Below are positions 38,843 to 64,000 of a stretch of DNA of 64,000 nt, one piece after another. The notes beneath the pieces are model-generated. The model made no database searches. It was not told where the DNA came from and worked only from the letters and a program-made list of their open reading frames with translations. The position numbers and the translations under genes were made by a program. The stretch is from Basidiobolus meristosporus CBS 931.73 (lineage: Eukaryota > Fungi > Basidiobolomycota), in the NCBI GenBank assembly GCA_002104905.1, contig MCFE01000294.1:37839-101838 (forward strand), in the 5' to 3' direction. How positions within the stretch are numbered: position 1 is the first letter of the stretch; each line of letters opens with the position of its first letter.

Positions 38843-40140
38843 GAAGTTCCACCTAAATACCCCCCTAAGTTAGTCACTGAGATCACTACCCACAAATCTT
38901 AGTGAATACTGACCAAATTCCTTTTTGTGATTTACTGGGAATACTTTCACCAAAACATCAAGTACCTAGAACATGAAAATTCTCAAAGTTGCCCAGATAG
39001 GCACAAACATTACACGCATATTCTTGGGATCTTCCTAACCATAATCTATGTGCTTATTATGCCAAGGCCATGTAAAAGCATAAATACTCCCTTAACACTC
39101 ATTAATTATTAAGTGAAAACCACATAATATACTTGTTCTCCCAGTCACTTGTAATATCTCCAAGACTCTTACAACAGAAGCAAAAGTAGTAAACAAACAT
39201 GTCTAGGAAGGTTCCAAGACCTTGTGTGCAAGCTTTGGAGCAGTTTGGACAACTTTGAGAAACTTCATGCTCTGGGTTCCTGATGACTTAGTAAATATAC
39301 CCTAAGAGAAGAAATTGAGAAAAGGCCTGCAGTATACAGTCATGATCTCTGCTGAACTCCAGCTTTCTCAAAACTGACAACCCTCAATATCTTGGGCTCC
39401 AGCTATTGGGCAAAGAAGCAGACATATTTTGCTGGAGGAGGCTAGGCTGACTAGCATTCATACAAAATTTGGTAAGCAGCTGCTCACTACTTCCACCCAA
39501 GATTGAAACAGTAAATTTCAATGAGAAACACCAGCAGAATACCAGCTGAGAATCACAAGTACTCCAAGTTTGCGATTTCTCCTAGGGATATTTGTAGCAC
39601 GTCCCGTCAAGGAATTTTACCAGATTTCCCCAAGATTTGTAGACTACGATCTAAATGACTAGGTTAGGTGAGTATTTGGGTGTAATTACGAAATTTACAA
39701 CACCAATCACTTCCAACATCTCCGGAACTCTTTCAACGAAGCTTGCAACAAACATGGACACGGCAATCTTTCTCCAGACCAGCAGCAGCAGTCACCAAGG
39801 CAAGGTAGACAGCCAAGGGCAGCAATATTGGGGCTCATTTCCTGTTGGAAGATTCTGGGGAGTGTTGGAAGTGATCGGGAGCACTAGAAGAGCTGTGTGA
39901 CATTCGCTTATCGTTAGATTTACAACTAGGAGGACTAGTAGATTATGTGGTGCTTATACTTGGACTTACATTAGGTCATGGCAAAACGAACATGCGTAAT
40001 ATGTCTGGAAAGGACCCGAAAATATTGGTGCAACGTTCAGGTGGGGAGGGGGTCATTTGAACAACATTAAGAGCTTGGGCGTCCAGGGTACCTGGCATTC
40101 TGGCGAAAATAGTCCGGGTAAATCCTGACGAAGAAACTCC
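38843..40140. repeat. Cluster of further copia LTR copies and fragments in both orientations
   Basis: ~38850-39176 (+), ~39190-39290 (-), ~39590-39702 (-) and ~39842-40140 (-, diverged, CpG-retaining). Confidence 0.65.
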
Positions 40141-42700: not shown

Positions 42701-44077
42701 TTACAATTGGTTTTTGATCTTCAAGGCAACCATGGCGGCCAATGCGGCGCCAACACCGCTACCGTCCTTGGCCATGGTAAGCTTGATGTGGTTCTCCACG
42801 ATATCAGAGCCAAGCAGCTCGCGCATGGCTTCGGTCAAGTTGCCCTCGAAGCCAGGGTAGAACTCGAACAGAGAGCCATCGATACCGATGGTGACCGATT
42901 GCTCGAGAAGATCTTGGCGGGCCGATACGACGGCGGCCAAACCAGCGCCAGCGAGTCTGGCGGCTCTACGACCGATCATGTGACAAATCCGCTTCAGCAT
43001 CTGGCGGTCAGTCAAGGTGGAGTCGTTGATGTCCAAGCTGTTCTCCAGGACGGATTTAGTGTCGGTGAGGTTCTCGGTGGTGTCACTCTCGATGGTAGAC
43101 ATGTAGGAGGTCTCGAAGGAGAATGGAGTGTTGAGCATCTTGGAAGATCTTCCGTCGAAGATCAAGCGTCTGTCAATCAAGTTGAAGAGGACCAGTTGGA
43201 CAAGAGTGCCCAGGTATTCGCCGGAGATCATCTTCTCGAAGATCTGGCTGCCGGGACTGATGGACTCGCGGTCCAAATGGTTGTCGAACATGGTGCAGGG
43301 GAGGGAAACTCTCTCGTTATCGAAGGCTCCCCATTCGATGTTGACGATCATGTCGTCGGACTTGATGTGGCTGAGGTCCATTTTGGTGATGTTGCGGGTC
43401 TTCTCGATGAAGGCGGTGTTACTTCCGGTGCCCAGGATGACTCCCATGACACTGTTACGATCTTGGTAGCTACTGGCGAGAAGGGTTCCCACGGTATCAT
43501 TGAGGATAGCAACCACCTTGACGTTGAGGCCAAGGTTGTCCAATGCGTACTGTAAAAGCTGGACCACGTCACGGCCGACGGCTCCGGGGATGTCGAATCC
43601 CTTGTTCCAACGGACAAGCTTGCCAGAGTCGATGGCGGTTTGGTCGATGGGGTAGGAGAAGGTGAAGCCCAAAGGAAGGGGCTTTCCGTCGACGTCGATC
43701 TGGTTGGAGATCTGGCCCAAGAAGAGCTCGACGTTTTGAGCCATGGTCTGGAAAAGCTCCTTGTGATCGCCGGTCTTCAGGCTGTTGGGGATGTTAAACT
43801 TGTGCTGCTTGAGGGCAATCTGACCTTGACCTTTGAGGGTAACCAGACAGACGCGAAGGTTGGTGCCACCTAGATCCAAGGCAAGGAACTGGCCAACCTC
43901 ATCGCCGGTAGCTCTGTCGGTGATGAAGGAGGGGATCATGTTGCCATTGAACTTGGGGTCGGATCTGCGGACCTTGATTTGCTCGAGGAAGTGCTCCTTG
44001 ATTTTCTGCAGCTGCTCGGCGGGGGCGGAGAATTGCTCCTCGAGAGCATTCATAGCCTGGATTTGTTCGGGGTTCAT
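42701..44077 (-). CDS. HXK: Hexokinase (intronless, 458 aa)
   Basis: LALDLGGTNLRV, LGFTFSYP, ILNDTVGT, GVILGTGSN, NIEWGAF, FEKMISG, IDGSLF and KDGSGVGAA; open frame with strong codon bias. Confidence 0.96.
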   Translation of the reverse strand: MNPEQIQAMNALEEQFSAPAEQLQKIKEHFLEQIKVRRSDPKFNGNMIPSFITDRATGDEVGQFLALDLGGTNLRVCLVTLKGQGQIALKQHKFNIPNSLKTGDHKELFQTMAQNVELFLGQISNQIDVDGKPLPLGFTFSYPIDQTAIDSGKLVRWNKGFDIPGAVGRDVVQLLQYALDNLGLNVKVVAILNDTVGTLLASSYQDRNSVMGVILGTGSNTAFIEKTRNITKMDLSHIKSDDMIVNIEWGAFDNERVSLPCTMFDNHLDRESISPGSQIFEKMISGEYLGTLVQLVLFNLIDRRLIFDGRSSKMLNTPFSFETSYMSTIESDTTENLTDTKSVLENSLDINDSTLTDRQMLKRICHMIGRRAARLAGAGLAAVVSARQDLLEQSVTIGIDGSLFEFYPGFEGNLTEAMRELLGSDIVENHIKLTMAKDGSGVGAALAAMVALKIKNQL

Positions 44078-51700: not shown

Positions 51701-51870
51701 AGCAAGTAGAGCTGGTGACCCAAAAACCGGTTCCTAGCAGGGAATCGAGCTAATCGGCTCCTGCAATCGTTTTGGGTGGTACGTCCTGAGAGGAATATTG
51801 GGGCACCCAATGGCTGTGTGATTGAGATGTTTATATAGATCTGCAGGTATGTGAGGGGCACGTCGCAAAT

Positions 51871-54800
51871 ATGTCTCAGCCCCTAAAGAGAACGAAGTTG
51901 GAGAATTGGCGGCTACGGGTGGAGCGTGGCCGCCAAGTATGGCACTATCTCCAAAGCGAATGCGAGACGGAACAGTGGCCTCAAACCGATTCGGATCGAT
52001 ATTGGTTAGGCCTGCAGTTGGTAAGTACGGAGCGGATCAGATGTAGAGGGCATAGAGTGAACATGTTTAACTCCATGATAGAAGGATGATCGCCCCTTGT
52101 CGCCACCAAAAACCCCGTTGGACGCCGCACGCAACGGCTTTGAATTCTATAAACGACTTCAAACAGAAGATGGTCATTGGGCTGGGGAATACGGTGGACC
52201 GAACTTCTTGATCCCTGGATATGTCTTTACCATGTACATCAGCAAGTCGGCGATTCCGGAGCATGAGCGCATGGAGCTTCTACGATATCTACTGAATATC
52301 GCTAACGAGGATGGTGGCTGGGGAATGTAAGTGGCTTGTCGGTGTCGGCCGTCCATGACATACTCTACTGAGCAAGTGTTTCGGCCCTGTCATTTAGCCA
52401 TACCGAAGGAGTGTCCACAGTGTTCGGAACCGCCCTGAACTACACTTGCTGCCGACTCCTAGGGTTGGATCCGGATGATCGAGCTTTGGTTAATGCGCGT
52501 GGCACCTTGCATAAACTTGGTAGGGGCTTCAATCGTCCTGTCAACGTTCGCACTTTCACTCACCACCGCCGCAGGAGGAGCCACAGGGATCCCTTCGTGG
52601 GGGAAATTTTGGCTCTCGTGTCTCAACGTATACGACTGGGACGGAATGAACCCGGTGCCTCCAGAGCTGTGGTAACTTGCCATTTCAGTAACCCTGTCGC
52701 TTCCCCAGGATTGACGGAATTATCAGGTTGCTACCCACCTGGCTACCGTTCCACCCATCCCGCTGGTGGGTGCATACACGAATGGTATACCTTCCAATGG
52801 GCTTGCTGTATGCAAAACGGTGTAAGGCGGAGGTGACTGATCTGATTCGGGAAGTGAGAGAAGTAACGTGTCAGTTTGCAAATGATCCAGCCCCTGCCAC
52901 TGTAATCGTGACAACTCCGTGGATATTATAGGAGCTTTACGGCCAGCCGTACAGCAGTATAGAATGGAAGAAGCAGCGAAGCAACATATCGCCGGCTGAT
53001 GCCTACTATCCTCACACCAGTCTTCTGAAGGTGCTCTACTCCTTTGCATCCGCATACGAGTGTGTCGCGCTCAAATCGCTGCGGCAGATGGCTCTGGATG
53101 AATCTTGGCGGCAGATCAAAATGGAGGATGAGAACACCGGCTATGGCAATCTGGCCTCTGTATGATTGAGGTTTCGTTTCATCATGTGGAAAGACTGTCG
53201 TTGAATGTTTGGTGCTGCAGGTTAACAAGGTCATGAATATGCTTTGCACCTACTTCCAAGAAGGCCCCGACTCCGCCGCGTTCATGAAGCACAAGGAAAA
53301 ATGCCGGGAGTATTTGTGGTACTGCTCGTATGGTATGGCCTCCATATCCGGATGATTGATGCTGATTCATGCAGGATGTCTGGCAAAGGGATGCTGTTCA
53401 ATGGAACCGACGGATCTCAGGTGTGGGACACATGTTGGGTGATACAAGCAGTGTGCGAAGGAGGTTCGTCTAACCAGGTGACTCATCGACATTCTCACTA
53501 ATCCATTACGTCAGGCTTGGCGACAGAGGGAGCTTTCCAAGAGTCCATGCAGCGTGCGCTCGACTTTTTAGATACTCAACAGGTAGGTAAGCAATGCATG
53601 TCAGCCGCCAAGTCCAGAGTCCCATTGTATCTTTGCAATAGATAAGAAATGACCCGCCAAACAGAGAGAGCTGCTACCGCGACGCCACAAAAGGCGCGTG
53701 GCCATTCAGCAAAGTCGATCAGGGGTACACATTATCTGACTGCACTGCTGAAGCCATCAAATGCGTCTTCTTGCTGCAGGAACTGGAGTAGGCCTTCAGT
53801 AATAGCGATTGCTGAGAAAAATCTCACCACTGACCCTAGCAAACCCGTAGGTTTATCCAACCGCGAGTGAGTGAGTCGCGTTTGTGCGAAGCCGTTGATA
53901 TTTTGCTATCGTTGCAAAACGCAGACGGCGGCTTTTCCACCTACGAAAAAACTCGAGGACCGTTTTTGTTGGAGACCATCAATCCAGCGGAGGTGTTTGG
54001 TACATTCGGGCCTTGTCCATTGGAATTGTACGCATATTCACGATGAGTTTCAGGGAATATCATGATCGAGTATAGCTACGTGGAATGCACCACTGCTTCT
54101 GTATTGGGTCTGAGTGCTGCCAAGAAAAGGTATCCTACATATCGTACTTCCGAAATTACGTAAGCTCTTCAAGAATGGTCCGATCTACGTCCCAGTCCCC
54201 ACTCATTTCGAATTAGAAACGCGATCGAAGGTGGATTCCAGTTCATCAAACAGAGCCAACGACCGGATGGAAGTTGGTATGGCTCATGGGCGATCTGCTT
54301 TACTTATGGTACCTGGTTCGGTTTGGAAGCGCTGGCCAACGCTGGAGAGTTCTATGAGAACAGGTAATATCTCGCTGTGACAATACCAAGGCCGATTGAA
54401 TTTGACCGAGCAAATTAGCGAGCACGCGCGTAAAGCTTGTGATTTTCTAGTGTCCAGACAAAAGGACGATGGGGGTTGGGGTGAGACTTACAAGGTAGTT
54501 TTTGGCATTGGAGTCTTTGAGGGCTTGGCTAATGATTTATTTTGTCCAGTCTTGTGAGACACACGTATATCAACAGCATCCGAAATCGCAAGTAGTGAAC
54601 ACTTGCTGGGCGTTGCTTGGCTTGATGGCATCCAGATACCCGGACGCAACTCCAATTAAGCGTGGAATACAGGTTTGCCTCAATCCAGCCCGAGCTTGCA
54701 AAACCAAATCGCTAATACCATGTAGCTTTTGATGGCACGCCAGCTACCCAACGGAGAATGGCTCCAGGAGTCTATTGAAGGGGTCTTCAACAGAAATGCA

Positions 54801-54896
54801 ATGATCAGCTATCCTAATTACAAGTTCGCATTTCCTGTCTGGGCATTATCGAGATTTAGTAAAGCATATGGAAACCCGGAGATGGCGATTGCTTAG
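51871..54896 (+). CDS. ERG7: Oxidosqualene cyclase (lanosterol synthase family), 16 exons / 15 short introns
   Basis: [44 protein letters not shown]-type repeats, [13 protein letters not shown] manual splice through all GT-AG introns gives an uninterrupted frame. Orthology to ERG7 is not proven. Confidence 0.9.
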
Positions 54897-57349
54897 ATGC
54901 TTATGCCAGTGACTTAGAACCACTATTGGAGCCCTGTGTGCCTCATTTCACATTTAATGCGAATAAGCTCATTAAATATCGGCTTTTTATTCTTCGAAGG
55001 GAGAGGGTGATTTGTTTTTTAATTTATCCATCAGTTGAACGGTGTTAGCAGCACCTCAGAGGCCAGTAGGAGTAGAAATGTGCACCCATCAATGTTGCAC
55101 GTTGCTTCGAGCCCAAAAGGGTTCCAAGCTATGGCTGCTAGATGTAACAATTGTTTTGCTGGCCTGGTTGTAGGTAATCCACATACCTCGATAAATCAAT
55201 GTGTTTCTGCTTGGGAATCCAGCTGATTGCTCACCTATATTACCAGATTGAACATGATTCACAATGGCGTACTTTACACAACTTTAGACTCGGTGTGTGT
55301 AGAAGTGGCATCGAAGGAGAAGAACATGGCACACTAGACCCGTTATATACATATCATTCGAAAGAGAGCCACCCAACGCAACGAAATCTAGAGATACCTT
55401 TCCTAATATCACTATTTTGAGGCAGACTCTGCTAACCTACTGCTCGTGCCAGAAGGAAGCTATTGCACCACAGGCTTCGCTTAGCGGTGGCAACAACTGT
55501 AAGTAGCACGCACCCCGATTTCCAGCCAACCAATGTTAGTAATAGCATGTCGGAGTACTCAATGATAGGAAAGTACAGTATGCTTAGAAGCTCACTCCTG
55601 AACGATGAGTGGTCTGCTATTGCCATCCAGTAGCCCTGCTTGTTCCGTTGGTTGGCATTAAACGTTAAGCCAGTTGGCCAAATGATTAGTAAAGTAAAAT
55701 CCTATGGGCCAGATTTTTTATGGTGGTGCTATCTAACCACTAGTGAATGTGTGGGTCAGAATCTCAGAACGATGTACAGGCGAAAACATGGGGAACGAAG
55801 TTCGTGCAAAGCAACAGCGAGTAAAGTGGAGAATGACGGATTGGCATAAATAGGGGAATTCAAGGAGACCCTAACTAAATCTTCAGTCTTCGGCTTGGGA
55901 CGCCATGAGTGCGACTGTGGCTAAGAAAACCTGTTCAAGCTGAGCATAGATGAGCGCATGGTTACTAGGTCCGTGAAACAGCCATATTTTCTCAATTAGC
56001 AATGAATTTCGTTCATTGAACAGCTCAGCGCTTCTGGTTGACTGACATAAACGCTTCCATGGGAGTCTGTTAGTGGATAGGACTGCAGAGCTTAAACGGC
56101 CTCCTTCGAAGCCCCATGGGAACGTGTGTCTGTTCCAAGTAAGTCCGTACGTAGCTCGTAATAATATGAATTACGGCAAATATTGTGGAGATGTTGTGAA
56201 AGTAGCATTCATTACTGAATACATTGTCCAGTTGTTCTCGGTCGATCTGATGTCTAATTGATCAAGAAGGTTGGCCGATTGCGTGCGTTCACTGGATACT
56301 TGTGATTTAAGGCTATAGCAAATGAGCGGTAATTCAACCACGCCACTTCCGGGTGGGGGCACCACTTCGCCATTAGCCTGTCTACAGCTATCAGGAGAGC
56401 ATGACAAGTAGAAATGCATACGATAGGAGTCATGAGAAAGGTACGATCCGGGATACTGAAGTTTGTCGAGCAAGCACATATATTCATGCCTTCCTAACCC
56501 AACAGGTAGCGCTCTAATATGGTAACTCCCTATCACAACAGTAGCGGGCAAATCGATTGGGTTTTCCTACCCCACTTTTCAGTCAATAAAGCATCGGACG
56601 GGGCCAAATCAGACGCACTCTATAGCATCGTTGGCATCCCCTTGTAACGTACAAGGTGGTGAACCCGGATCCCTATTCAATATGACGTTTGCGCCCATGC
56701 CACGATTTTATCTGGCGTATTTCGGTTACAATGTCTCCAAGGAAGGGGCTTCTTTCCTTCGCAGAAGGGGTAATCATCTTTTTGGACCTATTGAAGATAT
56801 GGCAATATAACACCCGTCATAGTACTGGAAAGATCAATGTCTCTCCGTCACCATCGAAGCACAGGCAGAGTTGATCGCTATGCGCAATACATCGATCTTC
56901 TCCCAAAATACCAAATACACCTTGGATTCCTGGCCCTATAAACCAGTTACTGGGTTTTACAACTGCAATAGCCTAGTTCCTCTGAAATGTCGTACACCTA
57001 TCGAAATTTGCAGGCAACACTCGTGTGCCATGCGTAAGTAAGCCCAGGTGGAAGTTACGTAAACACACACCAACAGCTGAACTAATTCAAATGAACGCAG
57101 TCACGCTACCTAACTGCAAAGGTGTACCACCGAAGTGCCCAGATTACCCATACTTTAGTTCAATTTGTACGCTGCTATCTCCGAGGTATTGTAAGTAAAG
57201 TGATATGGGTGCTACATGATATATTAATGATGCATTCGGATGCGAATCCGGTTATATGGATATAATGTCACGCTGAGCCTGGTGCAAAAGCAAGGGTTCC
57301 GATTTGCTTCAGTAATCAGCAGTGGGAAAATGGTTCTTTGCCGTCTCAG

Positions 57350-57358
57350 TATATATAT
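57350..57358 (+). promoter_or_regulatory. Candidate TATA element for the lysozyme gene
   Basis: TATATATAT about 45-50 bp upstream of ATG 57403. Confidence 0.35.
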
Positions 57359-57402
57359 CGGTTATTCCATACCATGAAGAGGCACCTAATCCATCTGTGA
57401 CT

Positions 57403-57894
57403 ATGCAGTTCAGCAGCAAGGGAGAGAATCTACTGAAAGCCATCGAAGTGCTTTCTTTGCAACCGTATGATGATCAAAAGGGTTTGAGTTCAGCACCAAT
57501 CAAGAGCTGGGTTGCTGGCGCCACCATTGGATACGGCCATTTGATTCCCAGTTCTCAATGGAGCAAGTACAAGAATGGGATCACCAAGGCTGAGGCGGAC
57601 GCCCTTTTCCAAGCCGATCTTAAGCCCTTTGTACAGGCAGTCAACGATTCAGTAAAAGTAAAGCTTCAGCAGCAGTTTGACGCTTGCGTGCTTCTTTGCT
57701 TCAACATTGGAGCTAGTGCTTTCAAGACCTCATCGGTGGTGAAAATATTGAATGGACAGACAACTACCTATCCTTCTCTGGAGGCCGCTTGGAAAGCCTG
57801 GAATAAAAGCCAAGGAAAGGTGAGCGCTGGGTTGGTTAACAGAAGAAATGCCGAATGGAAGATCTATACCCAAGGGATATACGAAAAGTGGTAG
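57403..57894 (+). CDS. GH24 phage-type lysozyme (muramidase), 163 aa, intronless
   Basis: AIEVLSLQPYDD (Glu...Asp), GATIGYGH, QFDA, FNIG and GLVNRRNAE. The first in-frame ATG is at 57403. Confidence 0.88.
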   Translation: MQFSSKGENLLKAIEVLSLQPYDDQKGLSSAPIKSWVAGATIGYGHLIPSSQWSKYKNGITKAEADALFQADLKPFVQAVNDSVKVKLQQQFDACVLLCFNIGASAFKTSSVVKILNGQTTTYPSLEAAWKAWNKSQGKVSAGLVNRRNAEWKIYTQGIYEKW

Positions 57895-58529
57895 TCATTA
57901 CGCTAATGCGTAGCCCTACCACACCAATACCTTGATGTCAAACATATCAGCCAATAAACTTCCTATCGCACATGAAATCTTTAGTCCAGATATCATCCAG
58001 AGATGGCCAAATACCTATCACTAACCGGTGCCACTTGTATAAACTTGACTGCCTCGTACCTGACAGCCACAATCAGATATAGCAATGATCTGCTTACTGC
58101 TAACAATACCATTTGCCAACAAGTCGTAGTTAAATAAGTGCTAGATGTTGGTGACACATAGATACTAACCCGTGTCACGGAGTCCCCAAGGGTCCAACTT
58201 CTGTTGGTTGATAAAGCAATTATATTGCTTGATACTGTATGAATGATGACTTATGTGTGCTGCTGGGATTGTCTTCAAGCTATGAGAAGGTCTAATTAGA
58301 TGACCTAGGTAAAGATAGCTACTCTTACTGTTCTAGATATTTGAATCTGATTTGCCGGCTCCTTTTTGCAACATCCTTTTCTTTAGGTATTTTCCAGATT
58401 ATTATTGAATAATCATATCAATACTTGTATACACGGATTCCTGAAGTTTGATGACGTAGGTAGACTCTCAAATAACTTGCATATATACAGTTACTTTAGT
58501 CCTCATTGTTGACAATACTGTAAGAGTAT

Positions 58530-59241
58530 TGGTGGTATTGAAAGTGATTGGGACCACAAGTAGACTCAGTGGTTTTGACTTAACAATCAATTGATTGTGG
58601 AAGTGGTATTTATACTTTTACATGATCTTGTCAGTAAAAACACATATATTATGTTCAGAACAATCTCAGAAGCATATGTGCAAAGCTTGCGGTTCTTTGG
58701 ACAACTCTGAGATTTCTTAGATTCTGTGCACCAGATGTTTTGCTGAGAAATATTCTAAGTAGATGTTGTAAGATTCTTCAAGATATCTTCAGTGATTGGG
58801 AGAGCATATAGATCATGTGGCTTTCACTTACTGATTGATTGAATGAAAAGAAATATTTATACTTTGACATGGTCTTGGCAAAACAAATGTAAAGAATTTA
58901 CTTAGAAAGCACCAAAGAGCAGGTGGAATTACAAATTTTTACAACACTCCCACTCAACTAAATGTTCATACTGACTAGTCCTAATTCTGACCTAAGATAT
59001 TCAAATTTGCCTATTGCTAATGGTCTGGTTAATGTGTCTGAAAACATTTCATATCTATGACAGTGAACTGGGTCAGCTTTGTTATGCTGTAAAAGTTTAT
59101 AATTCCACCTAAATATTCACCTCACTTAGTCACTTAGATCATTACCTATGTATCTTAGAGAATAGTGACCAAATTCCTTGTTAGGATTTAGTTAGAATAT
59201 TTATACCAAAATATCAGGTACCCAGAACATGAAAATTAACA
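58530..59241. mobile_element. Copia LTR fragments and RNase H/PPT end
   Basis: Minus-strand LTR pieces to 58945 preceded by PPT GAGTGGGAG; plus-strand LTR piece 59086-59241. Confidence 0.75.
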
Positions 59242-59783
59242 CCCTATGCAAAATCATTTGGTCCCGCAGGTGGATCCAATCCAGATCAGCTGTCAGGATC
59301 CTGTTTAGAGACTGTCATAATACCAGCAACTTGGAATTAGTGACCCTCTAAACAATCTCATAACAGGATCACAGCAGCATTTTGCTAATTCTACTGCCAA
59401 ATAAAGTTATAAAACTTGACAAGATTTGATTGGTGCTGTGACAATAATTGCATGGCATTGTTGCAGTATTATTGTGCTCTACAACTATTTAAATGGATAC
59501 AACCAGCCGGGACATCCAATTGCCTTATATGGCAAAAAATGTGACGGTAATTCAATGGCCTCATAACCAGACTCTAATAGCAATATAACAGCAGTATGGT
59601 AGCCTACAGCTAGTTCCATATAATGCTACCATACCAATTTACCAAATGGTATTTCCTTTTTCTACCTCCCCTTGTGCAACTCATATAGTCCACTGTAGAA
59701 TCACCCCTCTTCATTTGCCTACCCACTTGTTGTATCCAAGAGAAAGTGTAATAAAACTCTTGAATGGTTTAACTGAACCAAAG
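59242..59783 (-). mobile_element. CMC transposon right-arm fragment with terminal CCCTATG
   Basis: Reverse complement of ~22290-22817; it interrupts a copia LTR. Confidence 0.7.
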
Positions 59784-60424
59784 GGACAATTAAGTGCAGA
59801 ATCTTTGAATTGTCAGAGAGTGGCGGAAATATTAGCAGAAAGATTCTGATCTAATATTGGTCTTGGATATAGCTGGGTTGGCTATAAAGGCAATGATATT
59901 TGTTTGCTAGGCAGGCTAGGCTTGGTGTTCTTTGGAGTGCTAGATATACTAGGCTTGGATAGAAACTAGAACGGAATTGTTGGATTCTTATTTTTGCTGA
60001 GACAGAATCTTAATTTTGTTGAGACACACACTAAACCAAAAGGTTCAGTACACTTTATTTATACTTTTCTGATCAAGTTGAATTAGTAAGTGCCAAGGGA
60101 CTGGATTGATTGAAATCAATTTGGGTGTTCATAGGTGCATAAGATAAATGAAAATTACATCATCAATCAACTGATGTCTTGGCAACTGCACAGTGGTTGG
60201 ATAGATCTCAGATGACTAATCACCTGGGAAGGCTTGGCAGATAGGTTGATAACGTGATGACCATTTGAAAATAGATCAGGTGTGATAGCTAAAAATAGAT
60301 TCAGAGGTGGGATCAAATAAACTGTAACTGGGATTTGTTATGTTTGGGTTAGGGAAAATCAGTTAGGGTACTAGATTTTCAAACTGAGTAAAATTGGCAA
60401 AGTTTTAAATGTTGATGCACAACA
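59784..60424 (-). repeat. 3' LTR of the chromovirus
   Basis: TGTTGTGC starts right after PPT GGAAGGGAGTGA, which overlaps the pol stop; homologous to 6943-7561. Confidence 0.85.
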
Positions 60425-62938
60425 TCACTCCCTTCCAGAAGAGGAGTTTTTTGATACCTTCTGGGTTCCTCTGTGGCTCCAATACTGATTGATAATGGCA
60501 ACATCATCAAAGTTGGCGTAAGGTTCCCAGGTGTTGTGTCTGGCATCATAGCCTTTCCACTTGACTAAATAAAGGCAATTTGGTTCTTCTCCATCATGGT
60601 CCAAAATAGCTTCAACTTCATAGGATTCCAAAGTTACTGGGTCTTGAGAAATAAGTTTGAGTGAGGAAGGTGGAAAGTTTTTTGGTAGCAGTGCTCCAGT
60701 GTTATCTTGAAGTACATAAGATCCTCCAGTAGTGCGTCTGACAACCTTGAATGGTCCTTCATACTTGGGGTCAAGCTTAGATTGCCGGATTGGATCTAGT
60801 GTCATGACATATGACCCATCTGGGAAGCTGCTGTTCCTGTGTCTTGAGGCGTACGTTGAAGTCATCTTTTGCTGAGAGGCCTTACTTCTGGCACTGATAG
60901 CAGGGTAGACAATGTTGGTAAGGTACTCAAGCCGGTTCTTTAGCTTATCTGTATTCAAACTTGCTAACTCTGTATTCTGGTAGTCTCCAAAGTGGTTGTA
61001 TCTTCTTCCAAACATCAAGGAAAATGGGGTTGATCCATGTAGAGCGGCAATTTTGGTGTTGATAGCATACTGTACAGTCGGAATGTACTTGTCCCAATTC
61101 TTCTTGATACCTTTGATAGATTTCCTGATGATGTTCACTGAGGTCTGAACATGTCTTTCAGCCAGTCCATTAGCTTTGGGATGATATGGAGTGATCAGAC
61201 AATGATCAATGGCGCTATTCTGGCAAAGGGCTTTGATCACGTGATTCACAAATTCTGTTCCATTATCTGATTGAATGACCTTAGGGAATCCAAAAAGGCA
61301 GAAGAGCTTGAATAGTTCTTGTGCAATAGTGGCCGCATACTTGTCTGGGATGGCTTTGAGGAAGACAAAACGTGTGCAGACATCCACAATTACAAAGAGG
61401 TAGTGATTACCATCATCACTAGTGGTGAAAGGTCCAGCTAGATCAATTGCAATATGATCCATAGGAAGGCTTGCATGGATGGGGCTCAAAGGGTGAAATC
61501 CATGCTGGCTGATATTGTAAAGTTGACATTCCCTGCATGACTTGACAAATTCTAAGCAGTCAACTTTGATATTTGGCCAGTGATATCCATCAGAGTGTAG
61601 CTTCTTCATAAGTGTGTCAGCTCCAAAGTGGCCAAGTAAATGACTCCTCTGTATCAATGTTTTCCTTTGTTCTTCAGGTGGGATTTTCCAAGTTGCTGAA
61701 TCCAGTTGAGGAATTATTTTGGAAGTTGCAGAGAGTTTACTGATTACATCAGTAATCACATGTCCCTCCCAAGGTGAAGTTGGAAAAAGTCTTGACAGGT
61801 GGTCAGGAAGGATGTTGAGAATTCCTGGGCGATGAATAACTGTATATTCATAATCAAGTAGAGTATCAAGCCAGTTGGTAAGCATTGGAGTCAGAGTCTT
61901 CTGAGTGTGGATATAGACAAGGGCTTGGTGGTCAGTATACAAGGTAAAAGGTTTACCCCATAGATACTGATGAAACTTCTTCAAGGCAAAGACTATGGCA
62001 AGTAGCTCCTTCTTGGTAGCAGAGTAGTTTCTCTCAGCAGGTTGTAGGGACCTGGCTTGGAAAGAGATCCAGTGAGGTGGATTTTGGTCTTCATCTTGAT
62101 AGAGGACTGCCCCTAACCCAACATTAGATGCATCTGTAGCAACAACAAAGGGCTTAGTAAAGTCTGGGTAGGATAAGGTGGGTGCTTGTGGAAGCAGTTG
62201 GCAGAGTGACTCAAAGGCTTGGTCATGAGTCTTGTTCCAGGCTGAGGTGAGATCAGGGCTATGGCGTAATGCATCTAATGGGGCACTCAATGAGGACATG
62301 AGTGGTATGTGTTCCCTGAAATAGTTGAATACTCCAAGATAATGTTGAAGTTGCTTGGCGCTAGTGGGTTTTGGCCATTCTGGGATATTGACCAGTTTGA
62401 AAGGATCTAATTGGTGGCCAGCTGGTGTGACTATAAATCCAAGTAGATTGATTTTGAGGCGGGCAAAACTGCACTTTTCAGCATTGAGAATCAGTCCAGC
62501 AGTTGTCAGTCTGTTGATTACATCAGTGACATGGGTTGCATGATCATCACGGTTAGTGGAGAATATGATGACATCATCAACAAATACCAATGCATATGGT
62601 GCATTCTTGAGTATTATAGTCATGACTCTCTGAAACTTGCTGGTAAGTGTCTTTAGGCCAAAGAGAGCTCCCTGAAACATCCATTGCATATTATTCCAAG
62701 TAAAGGCAGTCTTATGCTGATGATCAGGATGGATCTGGAATTGGTGATATGCATCCTTCAAGTCCAACTTGGAGAATACTTTTACTCCAGATAGTGCGGA
62801 AAAGATATCTTGGATTCTTGGAATTGTAAACTTGTCATCTTGGAGAAGCTTGTTCAGAGGTCTGGGGTCCAAACAGGGTCTCTTCAGGGTTAGATTTCCA
62901 TCAGCATCTTTTTTTGGTGCAAGCGTCAAAGGGCTGTA
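60425..62938 (-). mobile_element. Ty3/gypsy chromovirus pol (RT-RNase H-integrase-chromodomain), open but 5'-truncated
   Basis: 834-codon ORF with SKLDLKDAYHQ, VFVDDVIIFS, TDASNVGLGAVL, HLLGH...C..C, SDNGTEF, GLAER and YEVEAIL...YLVKWKGY. No gag, protease or RT N-terminus upstream. Confidence 0.95.
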
Positions 62939-63772: not shown

Positions 63773-64000
63773 AGGGTTAGGGTTAGGGTTAGGGTTAGGG
63801 TTAGGGTTAGGGTTAGGGTTAGGGTTAGGGTTAGGGTTAGGGTTAGGGTTAGGGTTAGGGTTAGGGTTAGGGTTAGGGTTAGGGTTAGGGTTAGGGTTAG
63901 GGTTAGGGTTAGGGTTAGGGTTAGGGTTAGGGTTAGGGTTAGGGTTAGGGTTAGGGTTAGGGTTAGGGTTAGGGTTAGGGTTAGGGTTAGGGTTAGGTTA
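63771..64000 (+). repeat. Telomere (TTAGGG)n
   Basis: 37 perfect TTAGGG units (63771-63992), then TTAGG and TTA. The G-rich strand runs toward the end of the window. Confidence 0.98.

Follow-up and report, generated by a model that had tools for sequence, protein, structure and literature searches.

Bivalves have co-opted GH24 lysozyme genes from phages (Ren et al. 2017, PMC5303276), and GH25 muramidases have been transferred across domains (cited in PMC5303276 as reference 10). Among fungi, Coprinopsis cinerea produces three secreted, bacteria-induced GH24 lysozymes, LYS1-3 (PMC6461984), and the Trichophaea saccata enzyme CWBD-GH24 (PDB 8b2s) combines a GH24 domain with an SH3-like module (PMC10394673). 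GH24 counts are available for early-diverging fungi (PMC8778642), and the sole relevant entry in Ciach 2024 is a Piromyces Phage_lysozyme2 protein. [quoted passage not shown] 2020 (PMC7466969) reported 806 candidate bacterial genes (5%), mostly intronless and of host-like composition; the main text of that paper mentions neither lysozyme nor phage donors. As the screen required zero fungal BLASTP hits, the Basidiobolus lysozyme gene analyzed here may not be in its list. Our literature search found no paper on this gene.

An intact single-domain GH24 lysozyme gene

An exact match to the lysozyme protein lies on the 101,838-bp contig MCFE01000294.1 of assembly GCA_002104905.1. The final 64 kb of this contig, hereinafter designated the window, is the whole stretch of DNA that was analyzed, and all coordinates refer to it. 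The coding sequence and its predicted catalytic codons are as follows.

57403..57894, + strand: intronless coding sequence of a single-domain GH24 (T4-type) lysozyme (ORF, Pfam PF00959, PHROG 7, AF2, Foldseek)
57445..57447, + strand: Glu15 codon, predicted catalytic acid, equivalent to T4L Glu11 (invariant in 60 homologues)
57472..57474, + strand: Asp24 codon, predicted catalytic base, equivalent to T4L Asp20 (invariant in 60 homologues)
57523..57525, + strand: Thr41 codon in the TIGYGH motif, equivalent to T4L Thr26 (invariant in 60 homologues)

The sole long ORF at 57403-57894 runs on the + strand from an ATG at 57403 to a TAG stop at 57892-57894, encodes 163 aa and contains no internal stops. 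Its product matches Pfam PF00959 Phage_lysozyme over residues 26-151 with an E value of 2.5e-30 and 105.8 bits (gathering cut-off, 22.3 bits) and the PHROGs endolysin family phrog_7 with an E value of 5.9e-31, while a phmmer search of PDB sequences recovers phage and prophage GH24 muramidases (E 1e-17 to 3e-8). The AlphaFold2 model, computed from 60 homologues, has a mean pLDDT of 96.1 and a pTM of 0.88. Its best Foldseek match is the endolysin of E. coli phage FAHEc1 (7m5i, TM 0.73), and further matches include Acinetobacter phage endolysins, P22 lysozyme and T4 lysozyme (probability 1.00 for 7m5i, 8app, 2anv and the T4L entries, with TM 0.6-0.74). The model predicts the two-lobed alpha/beta fold of T4 lysozyme for the Basidiobolus protein, and the GH24 domain takes up the entire 163 aa by both Pfam and AF2. 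The 18-kDa product is basic, with a pI of 9.4 and a net charge of about +6.6.

Equivalence to T4L residues was assigned by position in the motif IE.L..PY.D...TIGYGH, not by residue-level structural superposition; on this basis Glu15, Asp24 and Thr41 form the predicted catalytic triad, and all three are also present in both fungal paralogs. The Asp-Thr insert (PYDDQKG...WVAGATIGYGH) and the C-terminal NKSQGKV..GL.NRR.AEW motif are common to the whole subfamily. The first-pass annotation of this DNA had described an intact, intronless 163-aa GH24 ORF with the catalytic Glu/Asp/Thr region, and had taken the PYDDQKG insert and the C-terminal tail for subfamily features; the ORF scan and Pfam match, the invariance of the triad and the alignment of relatives bear out all of this. 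From its family membership, the enzyme should be an inverting muramidase that, like T4 lysozyme, cuts peptidoglycan at its MurNAc-GlcNAc bond.

The nearest relatives are lysozymes of phages or phage-type contigs

The best 120 of 793 database relatives share 55-73% identity with the Basidiobolus lysozyme over its full length, and no named fungal protein from outside Basidiobolus is found among these best 120 of 793. The eight nearest non-fungal clusters (65-73% identity) are all phage-borne or lie in phage-type contigs, names or context having been checked for these eight; most database relatives are nameless. Cluster P0006 holds the lysozymes of two Klebsiella phages, vB_KpM_FBKp34 and KP13-16, with genomes of 137-141 kb. 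Clusters P0002, P0003, P0004, P0005, P0007, P0008 and P0009 sit in gene-dense same-strand arrays alongside PhoH, ribonucleotide reductase (RNR), glutaredoxin, Metallophos, rIIB, terminase and HNH genes. The order RNR-glutaredoxin-x-x-lysozyme-PhoH is that of FBKp34 (subfamily Stephanstirmvirinae), and lysozyme is followed by PhoH as in FBKp34 in five of the gene-dense contigs.

Lysozymes of Aeromonas and Pseudaeromonas phages are more distant (58% identity), as are named bacterial proteins from Entotheonella, Nitrococcus, Gallaecimonas, Zoogloea, Moritella and Cellvibrio (57-62%), which usually have additional N-terminal domains or are annotated as T6SS PAAR/VgrG proteins. An exhaustive representative search, whose output gives no taxonomy, added domain-fusion diversity only. 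When longer, fused fungal kin were sought by way of a 405-aa bacterial relative, the named matches were all bacterial.

In the maximum-likelihood tree of 62 sequences, a split with support of 98/97 sets 31 phage rows, the fungal pair among them, apart from 31 rows of bacterial type. The fungal pair itself has support of 100/99 and its sister group consists of P0002 and P0004 from phage contigs (81/80), and the AU test does not reject an all-phage clade without the fungus (p 0.33). The tree supports a placement of the Basidiobolus lysozyme with the phage clade, its exact sister not being fixed. The direction of transfer is clear, since the fungal gene forms one tip lineage, from one fungus, inside a phage and bacterial radiation that is both deep and diverse. 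Large myoviruses that infect gamma-proteobacteria are the best-supported candidate donors, ahead of a bacterial chromosome.

The first-pass annotation had proposed horizontal transfer of a bacterial/phage-type GH24 gene. The transfer itself is supported by the 98/97 placement in the phage clade. There is no sign, among the best 120 clusters, of the broad, vertically inherited fungal clade that it had named as evidence to the contrary.

A bacterial chromosome may still have supplied the gene, as a PG_binding_1-fused or T6SS PAAR/VgrG-linked proteobacterial lysozyme whose phage likeness results from exchange between phages and bacteria, although we regard this as unlikely. Every protein above 64% identity is phage-borne or lies in a phage-type contig, and the split that groups the fungus with the phage set has support of 98/97, even if the AU test allows a position just outside the sampled phage clade. 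Bacteria, among them Entotheonella, Nitrococcus, Gallaecimonas, Moritella and Cellvibrio, have many members of the subfamily at 55-63% identity, and the PAAR/VgrG-annotated proteins belong to it as well; most of these bacterial kin, however, have N-terminal domains, whereas the fungal and phage proteins are bare domains of 163-164 aa.

The lysozyme gene is integrated in the fungal chromosome

Three features of the window define the chromosomal setting of the gene.

about 51869..55506, + strand: multi-exon gene for a 714-aa squalene-hopene/oxidosqualene cyclase (SQHop_cyclase; gene table)
60425..62929, - strand: pol ORF of a Ty3/gypsy chromodomain retrotransposon (Pfam RVT_1, RT_RNaseH, rve, Integrase_H2C2, Chromo)
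about 63775..64000, + strand: TTAGGG telomere repeats at the contig end (sequence)

The cyclase gene extends over 3.6 kb upstream of the lysozyme, and the telomere repeats lie 5.9 kb beyond the lysozyme stop codon, in agreement with the initial description of a gene between a multi-exon eukaryotic gene and a transposon, about 6 kb from the telomere. Public runs were compared over window positions 54800-60400. A Logan read-derived contig of 10,218 nt from run X1 covers 54800-58886 with no differences and connects the 3' end of the cyclase gene, the lysozyme gene and 1 kb of downstream DNA; X1 derives from the same sample as the assembly, such that its strain is not independent, though its assembly may be. 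This contig supplies the link between lysozyme and flanks whose absence the first reading had named as counter-evidence. The lysozyme gene is physically integrated in the host chromosome and is no contaminant.

When eight phage loci were compared by tblastx with the window and both paralog loci, matches were confined to the lysozyme coding sequence, indicating that a single phage gene was retained. No remnants of PhoH, RNR, Metallophos or other phage-neighbor genes were detected by tblastx around the three fungal loci. With a chromosomal location in the fungus and flanks free of phage genes, the protein is derived from an endolysin but is not an endolysin in function.

Duplication, purifying selection and an old transfer

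The 90% cluster of the window protein holds a second protein, P0121 (ORX76865.1/ORX89696.1), which GenBank names 'putative phage lysozyme' (Basidiobolus meristosporus CBS 931.73), so that at least the paralog is already publicly annotated as a phage lysozyme. Two loci, on MCFE01000427.1 (L005) and MCFE01000912.1 (L006), code for P0121; they are 98-99% identical across more than 12 kb and thus represent a recent segmental duplication or haplotigs. Beside the paralog in L005 lies a pair of identical Cys-rich ORFs of 93 aa whose N-termini are hydrophobic and signal-like.

P0121 and the window copy share 94% protein identity and 83% DNA identity. The 83 nucleotide differences between them correspond to 68 synonymous and 10 non-synonymous codon changes, giving a dN of 0.03, a dS of 0.8-1.9 depending on the method and an omega of about 0.02-0.04. 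These values indicate strong purifying selection on the fungal lysozyme gene. The sites of the ten replacements vary among phage homologues too. Val16, which lies beside the catalytic Glu and is Gly in the paralog, was considered as a damaging change and rejected, Val being the majority residue in the phage clade.

GC3 is 0.53 in the window copy and 0.67 in the paralog, compared with 0.19-0.39 in nine phage homologues; the mean coding GC reported for B. meristosporus is 0.4865 (Tabima et al. 2020, PMC7466969). The drift of gene composition to that of the host implies that the transfer is old. A recent subtelomeric insertion is rejected in favor of an old transfer followed by duplication.

A conserved promoter and an apparently abundant transcript

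The flanks of the coding sequence contain the following features.

57308..57402, + strand: 5' flank conserved across both paralog lineages, comprising promoter and short 5' UTR (blastn against L005/L006, alignment)
57350..57358, + strand: TATA-box-like run TATATATAT, 45-53 nt upstream of the ATG, conserved in paralogs (sequence, paralog alignment)
57460..57972, + strand: exact-match contig of run X3, depth 3805 (cDNA-like run)
57953..57958, + strand: AATAAA polyadenylation-signal-like hexamer, 14 nt before the contig end (sequence)

Homology with the paralog loci starts 95 nt 5' of the ATG and breaks off precisely with the stop codon. Within this common 5' segment are a conserved TATATATA run (57350-57358) and a TGGGAAAATG motif, so that the upstream TATA-like run seen at first reading falls within sequence that the paralog has kept. 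That the copies share a eukaryote-type promoter argues for one acquisition followed by duplication rather than two acquisitions.

The same alignment shows an indel of 13 nt, and in the paralog a TAA lies in frame 12 nt ahead of the ATG; together these rule out a conserved N-terminal extension or a signal-peptide exon. An upstream signal-peptide exon is rejected, as the paralog flanks share only about 95 nt, interrupted by this indel and stop. Within the lysozyme no hydrophobic N-terminal segment was found, the maximum Kyte-Doolittle value being 1.75 compared with 2.76 in a neighboring secreted peptide. The lack of a signal peptide stated in the first-pass annotation is thus confirmed by the hydropathy of the N-terminus and by the lack of conserved upstream coding sequence.

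Evidence of transcription comes from run X3, which belongs to the same study as the assembly and was labelled 'DNA?' by guess. We infer that X3 is cDNA from its behavior: one contig joins 56146 to 56232, omitting 85 nt (56147-56231) that start with GT and end with AG, and the run covers the stretch only in part, leaving intergenic DNA uncovered, with no coverage over 56670-57417 or 57979-58352. Its contigs terminate in Illumina adapter sequence. The lysozyme is matched exactly over 513 nt, at a depth about 100 times that of neighboring transcripts (three neighboring exact-match contigs have depths of 12.7-33.8), contig depth being a crude measure of expression. The match is to the window copy and not to the 17%-diverged paralog. 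With X3 taken as cDNA, the lysozyme gene is transcribed, and the lack of expression that the first reading had named as counter-evidence is contradicted by this exact contig (57460-57972, depth 3805).

The first position of the X3 contig lies 57 nt into the ORF, and the bin 57231-57417, which includes the first 15 nt of the ORF, has a depth of 0. The lysozyme has one Met only, and its first 54 nt differ from the paralog by eight synonymous changes and two replacements; the single Met and the constraint on residues 1-20 strongly imply translation from 57403. The position of the AATAAA hexamer fits an interpretation of the contig end at 57972 as the 3' end of the mRNA, a probable poly(A) site. 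Runs X4 and X5, from another strain, contain no match to the lysozyme, nor to the adjacent cyclase at >=85%; as this neighboring gene is also unseen there, the two runs say little on the presence of the lysozyme.

Proposed history and role of the gene

We propose, with a probability of roughly 0.8, that this is a domesticated phage lysozyme gene, captured long ago by B. meristosporus, duplicated and kept, with a likely antibacterial use. One GH24 gene, minus its phage neighbors, would have entered the Basidiobolus lineage long ago, straight from a large myovirus that infects gut or aquatic gamma-proteobacteria or by way of a bacterium infected with it, the closest known relatives of the source being Stephanstirmvirinae-like phages such as Klebsiella phage vB_KpM_FBKp34. 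A TATA-box promoter and a 3' end of the AATAAA type would then have been added, gene composition would have shifted toward that of the host, and duplication into at least two lineages would have given the three loci in the assembly, with retention under strong purifying selection. Its use would most likely be antibacterial or bacteriolytic, for defense or feeding in a gut and dung niche rich in bacteria.

Holin-dependent phage endolysins have no signal peptide, and the absence of one in the fungal enzyme is their legacy. Without a signal peptide, the lysozyme would have to gain access to peptidoglycan through non-classical export, through release on lysis or senescence of cells, or within the cell itself, and an extracellular antibacterial role is not obvious. 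We give about even odds to an antibacterial or bacteriolytic role in gut and dung in which the enzyme leaves the cell non-classically or is set free by cell breakage. At distinctly lower odds, the enzyme may act within the cell, for instance on bacteria that invade it or in the turnover of muropeptides.

It is doubtful that the protein has been retooled for a non-antibacterial function, be it intracellular or housekeeping, muropeptide turnover or sensing, or remodeling of the fungus's own wall. Bacterial SpmX, which carries a detoxified lysozyme domain, provides a parallel for a housekeeping role. The Basidiobolus protein, however, retains the catalytic triad and every position that is invariant in the subfamily, the ten paralog differences being confined to variable sites, and a protein in the cytosol would not come into contact with the wall of the fungus. 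Absence of the signal peptide in both paralog lineages and the seemingly high transcript abundance in a library from a probably axenic culture are compatible with such retooling, as is the listing of fungal GH24 under 'cell wall remodelling' in PMC8778642; the fungal GH24s that have been characterized nevertheless lyse bacteria (PMC6461984, PMC10394673).

A further scenario, to which we assign a similarly small share of the probability, holds that a lytic-phage endolysin acquired direct from phage DNA now acts as an abundant cytosolic enzyme that protects the fungus from bacteria invading or living in its hyphae, or as a reserve freed when hyphae or spores break. Such deployment, if true, would be unlike that of the secreted lysozymes of other fungi and animals.

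Much less probable is descent of the lysozyme from an old, vertically inherited fungal GH24 family represented by Coprinopsis LYS and Trichophaea CWBD-GH24. GH24 proteins do occur in Linderina, Piromyces, Coprinopsis and Trichophaea (PMC8778642, PMC6461984, PMC10394673), but the Trichophaea protein 8b2s, the sole fungal GH24 compared, shares only about 30% identity (56 bits) with the Basidiobolus lysozyme, as opposed to 73% (272 bits) for phage proteins. Named non-Basidiobolus fungal proteins are absent both from the best 120 clusters and from the listed longer kin, and the Basidiobolus gene encodes neither a signal peptide nor a defensin-like or SH3-like module, such that vertical descent is largely refuted.

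Bacterial or phage contamination or a chimeric assembly, which an intronless ORF of prokaryotic affinities close to a contig end might suggest, is refuted by linkage and paralog evidence: a read-derived contig connects the ORF to an intron-rich fungal gene, the assembly has three loci with fungal flanks at each, GC3 is host-like, the TATA region is conserved between paralogs, other phage genes are absent nearby and the contig terminates in a telomere.

Eukaryotic lysozyme transfer, fungal GH24s, mass horizontal gene transfer into Basidiobolus and the GenBank name of the paralog are already known, making the gene less novel than the first-pass annotation held. What is new is the likely donor clade, large lytic myoviruses of enteric and aquatic gamma-proteobacteria; our analysis also adds the age of the transfer and the duplication, shows how strong the selection is, and contributes the promoter common to the paralogs, the evidence of a transcript and a contrast with secreted multi-domain fungal GH24s. 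As a domesticated phage lysozyme, the gene would offer a clean, datable example of a gene from a virus of bacteria turned into a working fungal gene. Its apparent donors infect gut and water bacteria of the Klebsiella and Aeromonas type, matching the amphibian and reptile gut ecology of Basidiobolus, and the published picture of bacterial gene transfer into this fungus would widen to include phage donors and antibacterial enzymes. The missing signal peptide raises the question of how eukaryotes deploy captured endolysins, and GH24 enzymes as small and basic as this one attract interest as enzybiotics or feed muramidases.

Comparison with known lysozymes

The Stephanstirmvirinae-like lysozymes (vB_KpM_FBKp34 QQV91822.1, KP13-16 and uncultured phage contigs) resemble the fungal protein most closely. 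They have the same length of 163-164 aa, 67-73% full-length identity, and the same Asp-Thr insert and C-terminal motif, and like the fungal protein they consist of a single domain without a signal or SAR sequence. The genes differ in their setting: the phage genes sit in compact, operon-like arrays (RNR-glutaredoxin-lysozyme-PhoH) and have a GC3 of 0.30-0.39, whereas the fungal gene is solitary, with a TATA promoter, host-like GC3 and fungal flanks.

The phage-type GH24 genes of bivalves (PMC5303276) were likewise transferred to a eukaryote and repeatedly duplicated, and there too donor and recipient share a niche. The bivalve genes have gained introns and fusions, in contrast to the intronless and unfused Basidiobolus gene, whose recipient is a fungus and whose donor clade is different. 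GH25 transfers also concern antibacterial wall hydrolases that eukaryotes have repeatedly acquired, in a different enzyme family.

Coprinopsis LYS and Trichophaea GH24 share the catalytic fold and residues of the Basidiobolus protein, and bacterial peptidoglycan is the likely target of all of them. The Coprinopsis and Trichophaea enzymes possess a signal peptide and an N-terminal defensin-like or SH3-like wall-binding module, neither of which is present in the Basidiobolus protein. The Basidiobolus lysozyme stems from a separate transfer than these secreted fungal GH24s.

Sequence context of the lysozyme gene

Near position 40000 the GC content of the window rises abruptly, from 0.36-0.41 to values of 0.52-0.55, and the GC-rich block contains a hexokinase ORF that is apparently intronless. 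Downstream of the lysozyme, dispersed repeats set in ~460 nt past the stop codon; over these repeats the summed contig depth in X1, a public run from the same sample as the assembly, climbs from 109 to values as high as 1.2 million, and inverted joints are numerous. The interval separating the cyclase gene from the lysozyme gives rise to a spliced transcript. X3, a same-study run that behaves as cDNA, has a contig in which 56146 is joined to 56232 with removal of an 85-nt GT-AG intron, and the gene table of the lysozyme locus (L007) holds no model at this position.

Features of the window
42701-44077, minus strand: uninterrupted 458-aa hexokinase ORF (Hexokinase_1 and Hexokinase_2)
55957-56438, plus strand: unannotated spliced transcript (X3 contig)
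58353-60400: very-high-copy dispersed repeats (X1 contig depth)

Paralogous loci

Repeats related to those that follow the window lysozyme (73-83% identity) are found upstream of the lysozyme paralogs at L005 (MCFE01000427.1) and L006 (MCFE01000912.1). L005 6901-19626 and L006 903-12990 share 98-99% identity across a span exceeding 12 kb, with 0 differences in the enclosed lysozyme CDS; the shared stretch is a recent segmental duplication or a pair of uncollapsed haplotigs. Identical, repeated ORFs adjoin the paralog downstream at both loci.

93-aa ORFs beside the paralogous lysozyme
L005 10875-11156 and 12955-13236, minus strand
L006 4864-5145 and 6315-6596, minus strand

These ORFs have no Pfam match; their hydrophobic, signal-like N-terminus and numerous cysteines (MRFFICLLCSL...CCAVCL) are features of what may be small secreted Cys-rich peptides. 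Next to the window copy, no ORF of this kind was noticed.

The subfamily in bacteria and phage

The subfamily of the window lysozyme recurs in P0099, P0100, P0355, P0357 and P0362 and in the long proteins P0161, P0171, P0176 and P0183: bacterial proteins as long as 1425 aa have it as their C-terminal domain, and proteins with a T6SS PAAR or VgrG annotation contain it too. The PAAR and VgrG annotations suggest that bacteria deploy the subfamily as a secreted antibacterial effector. A relative 65% identical to the window lysozyme, P0007, belongs to a phage-type lysozyme-Metallophos array on a short contig (L013; JACCDR011347353.1, 3028 bp) of the very fragmented NCBI assembly GCA_013565735.1, and this array has the look of phage DNA included in the assembly rather than of a second eukaryotic acquisition.
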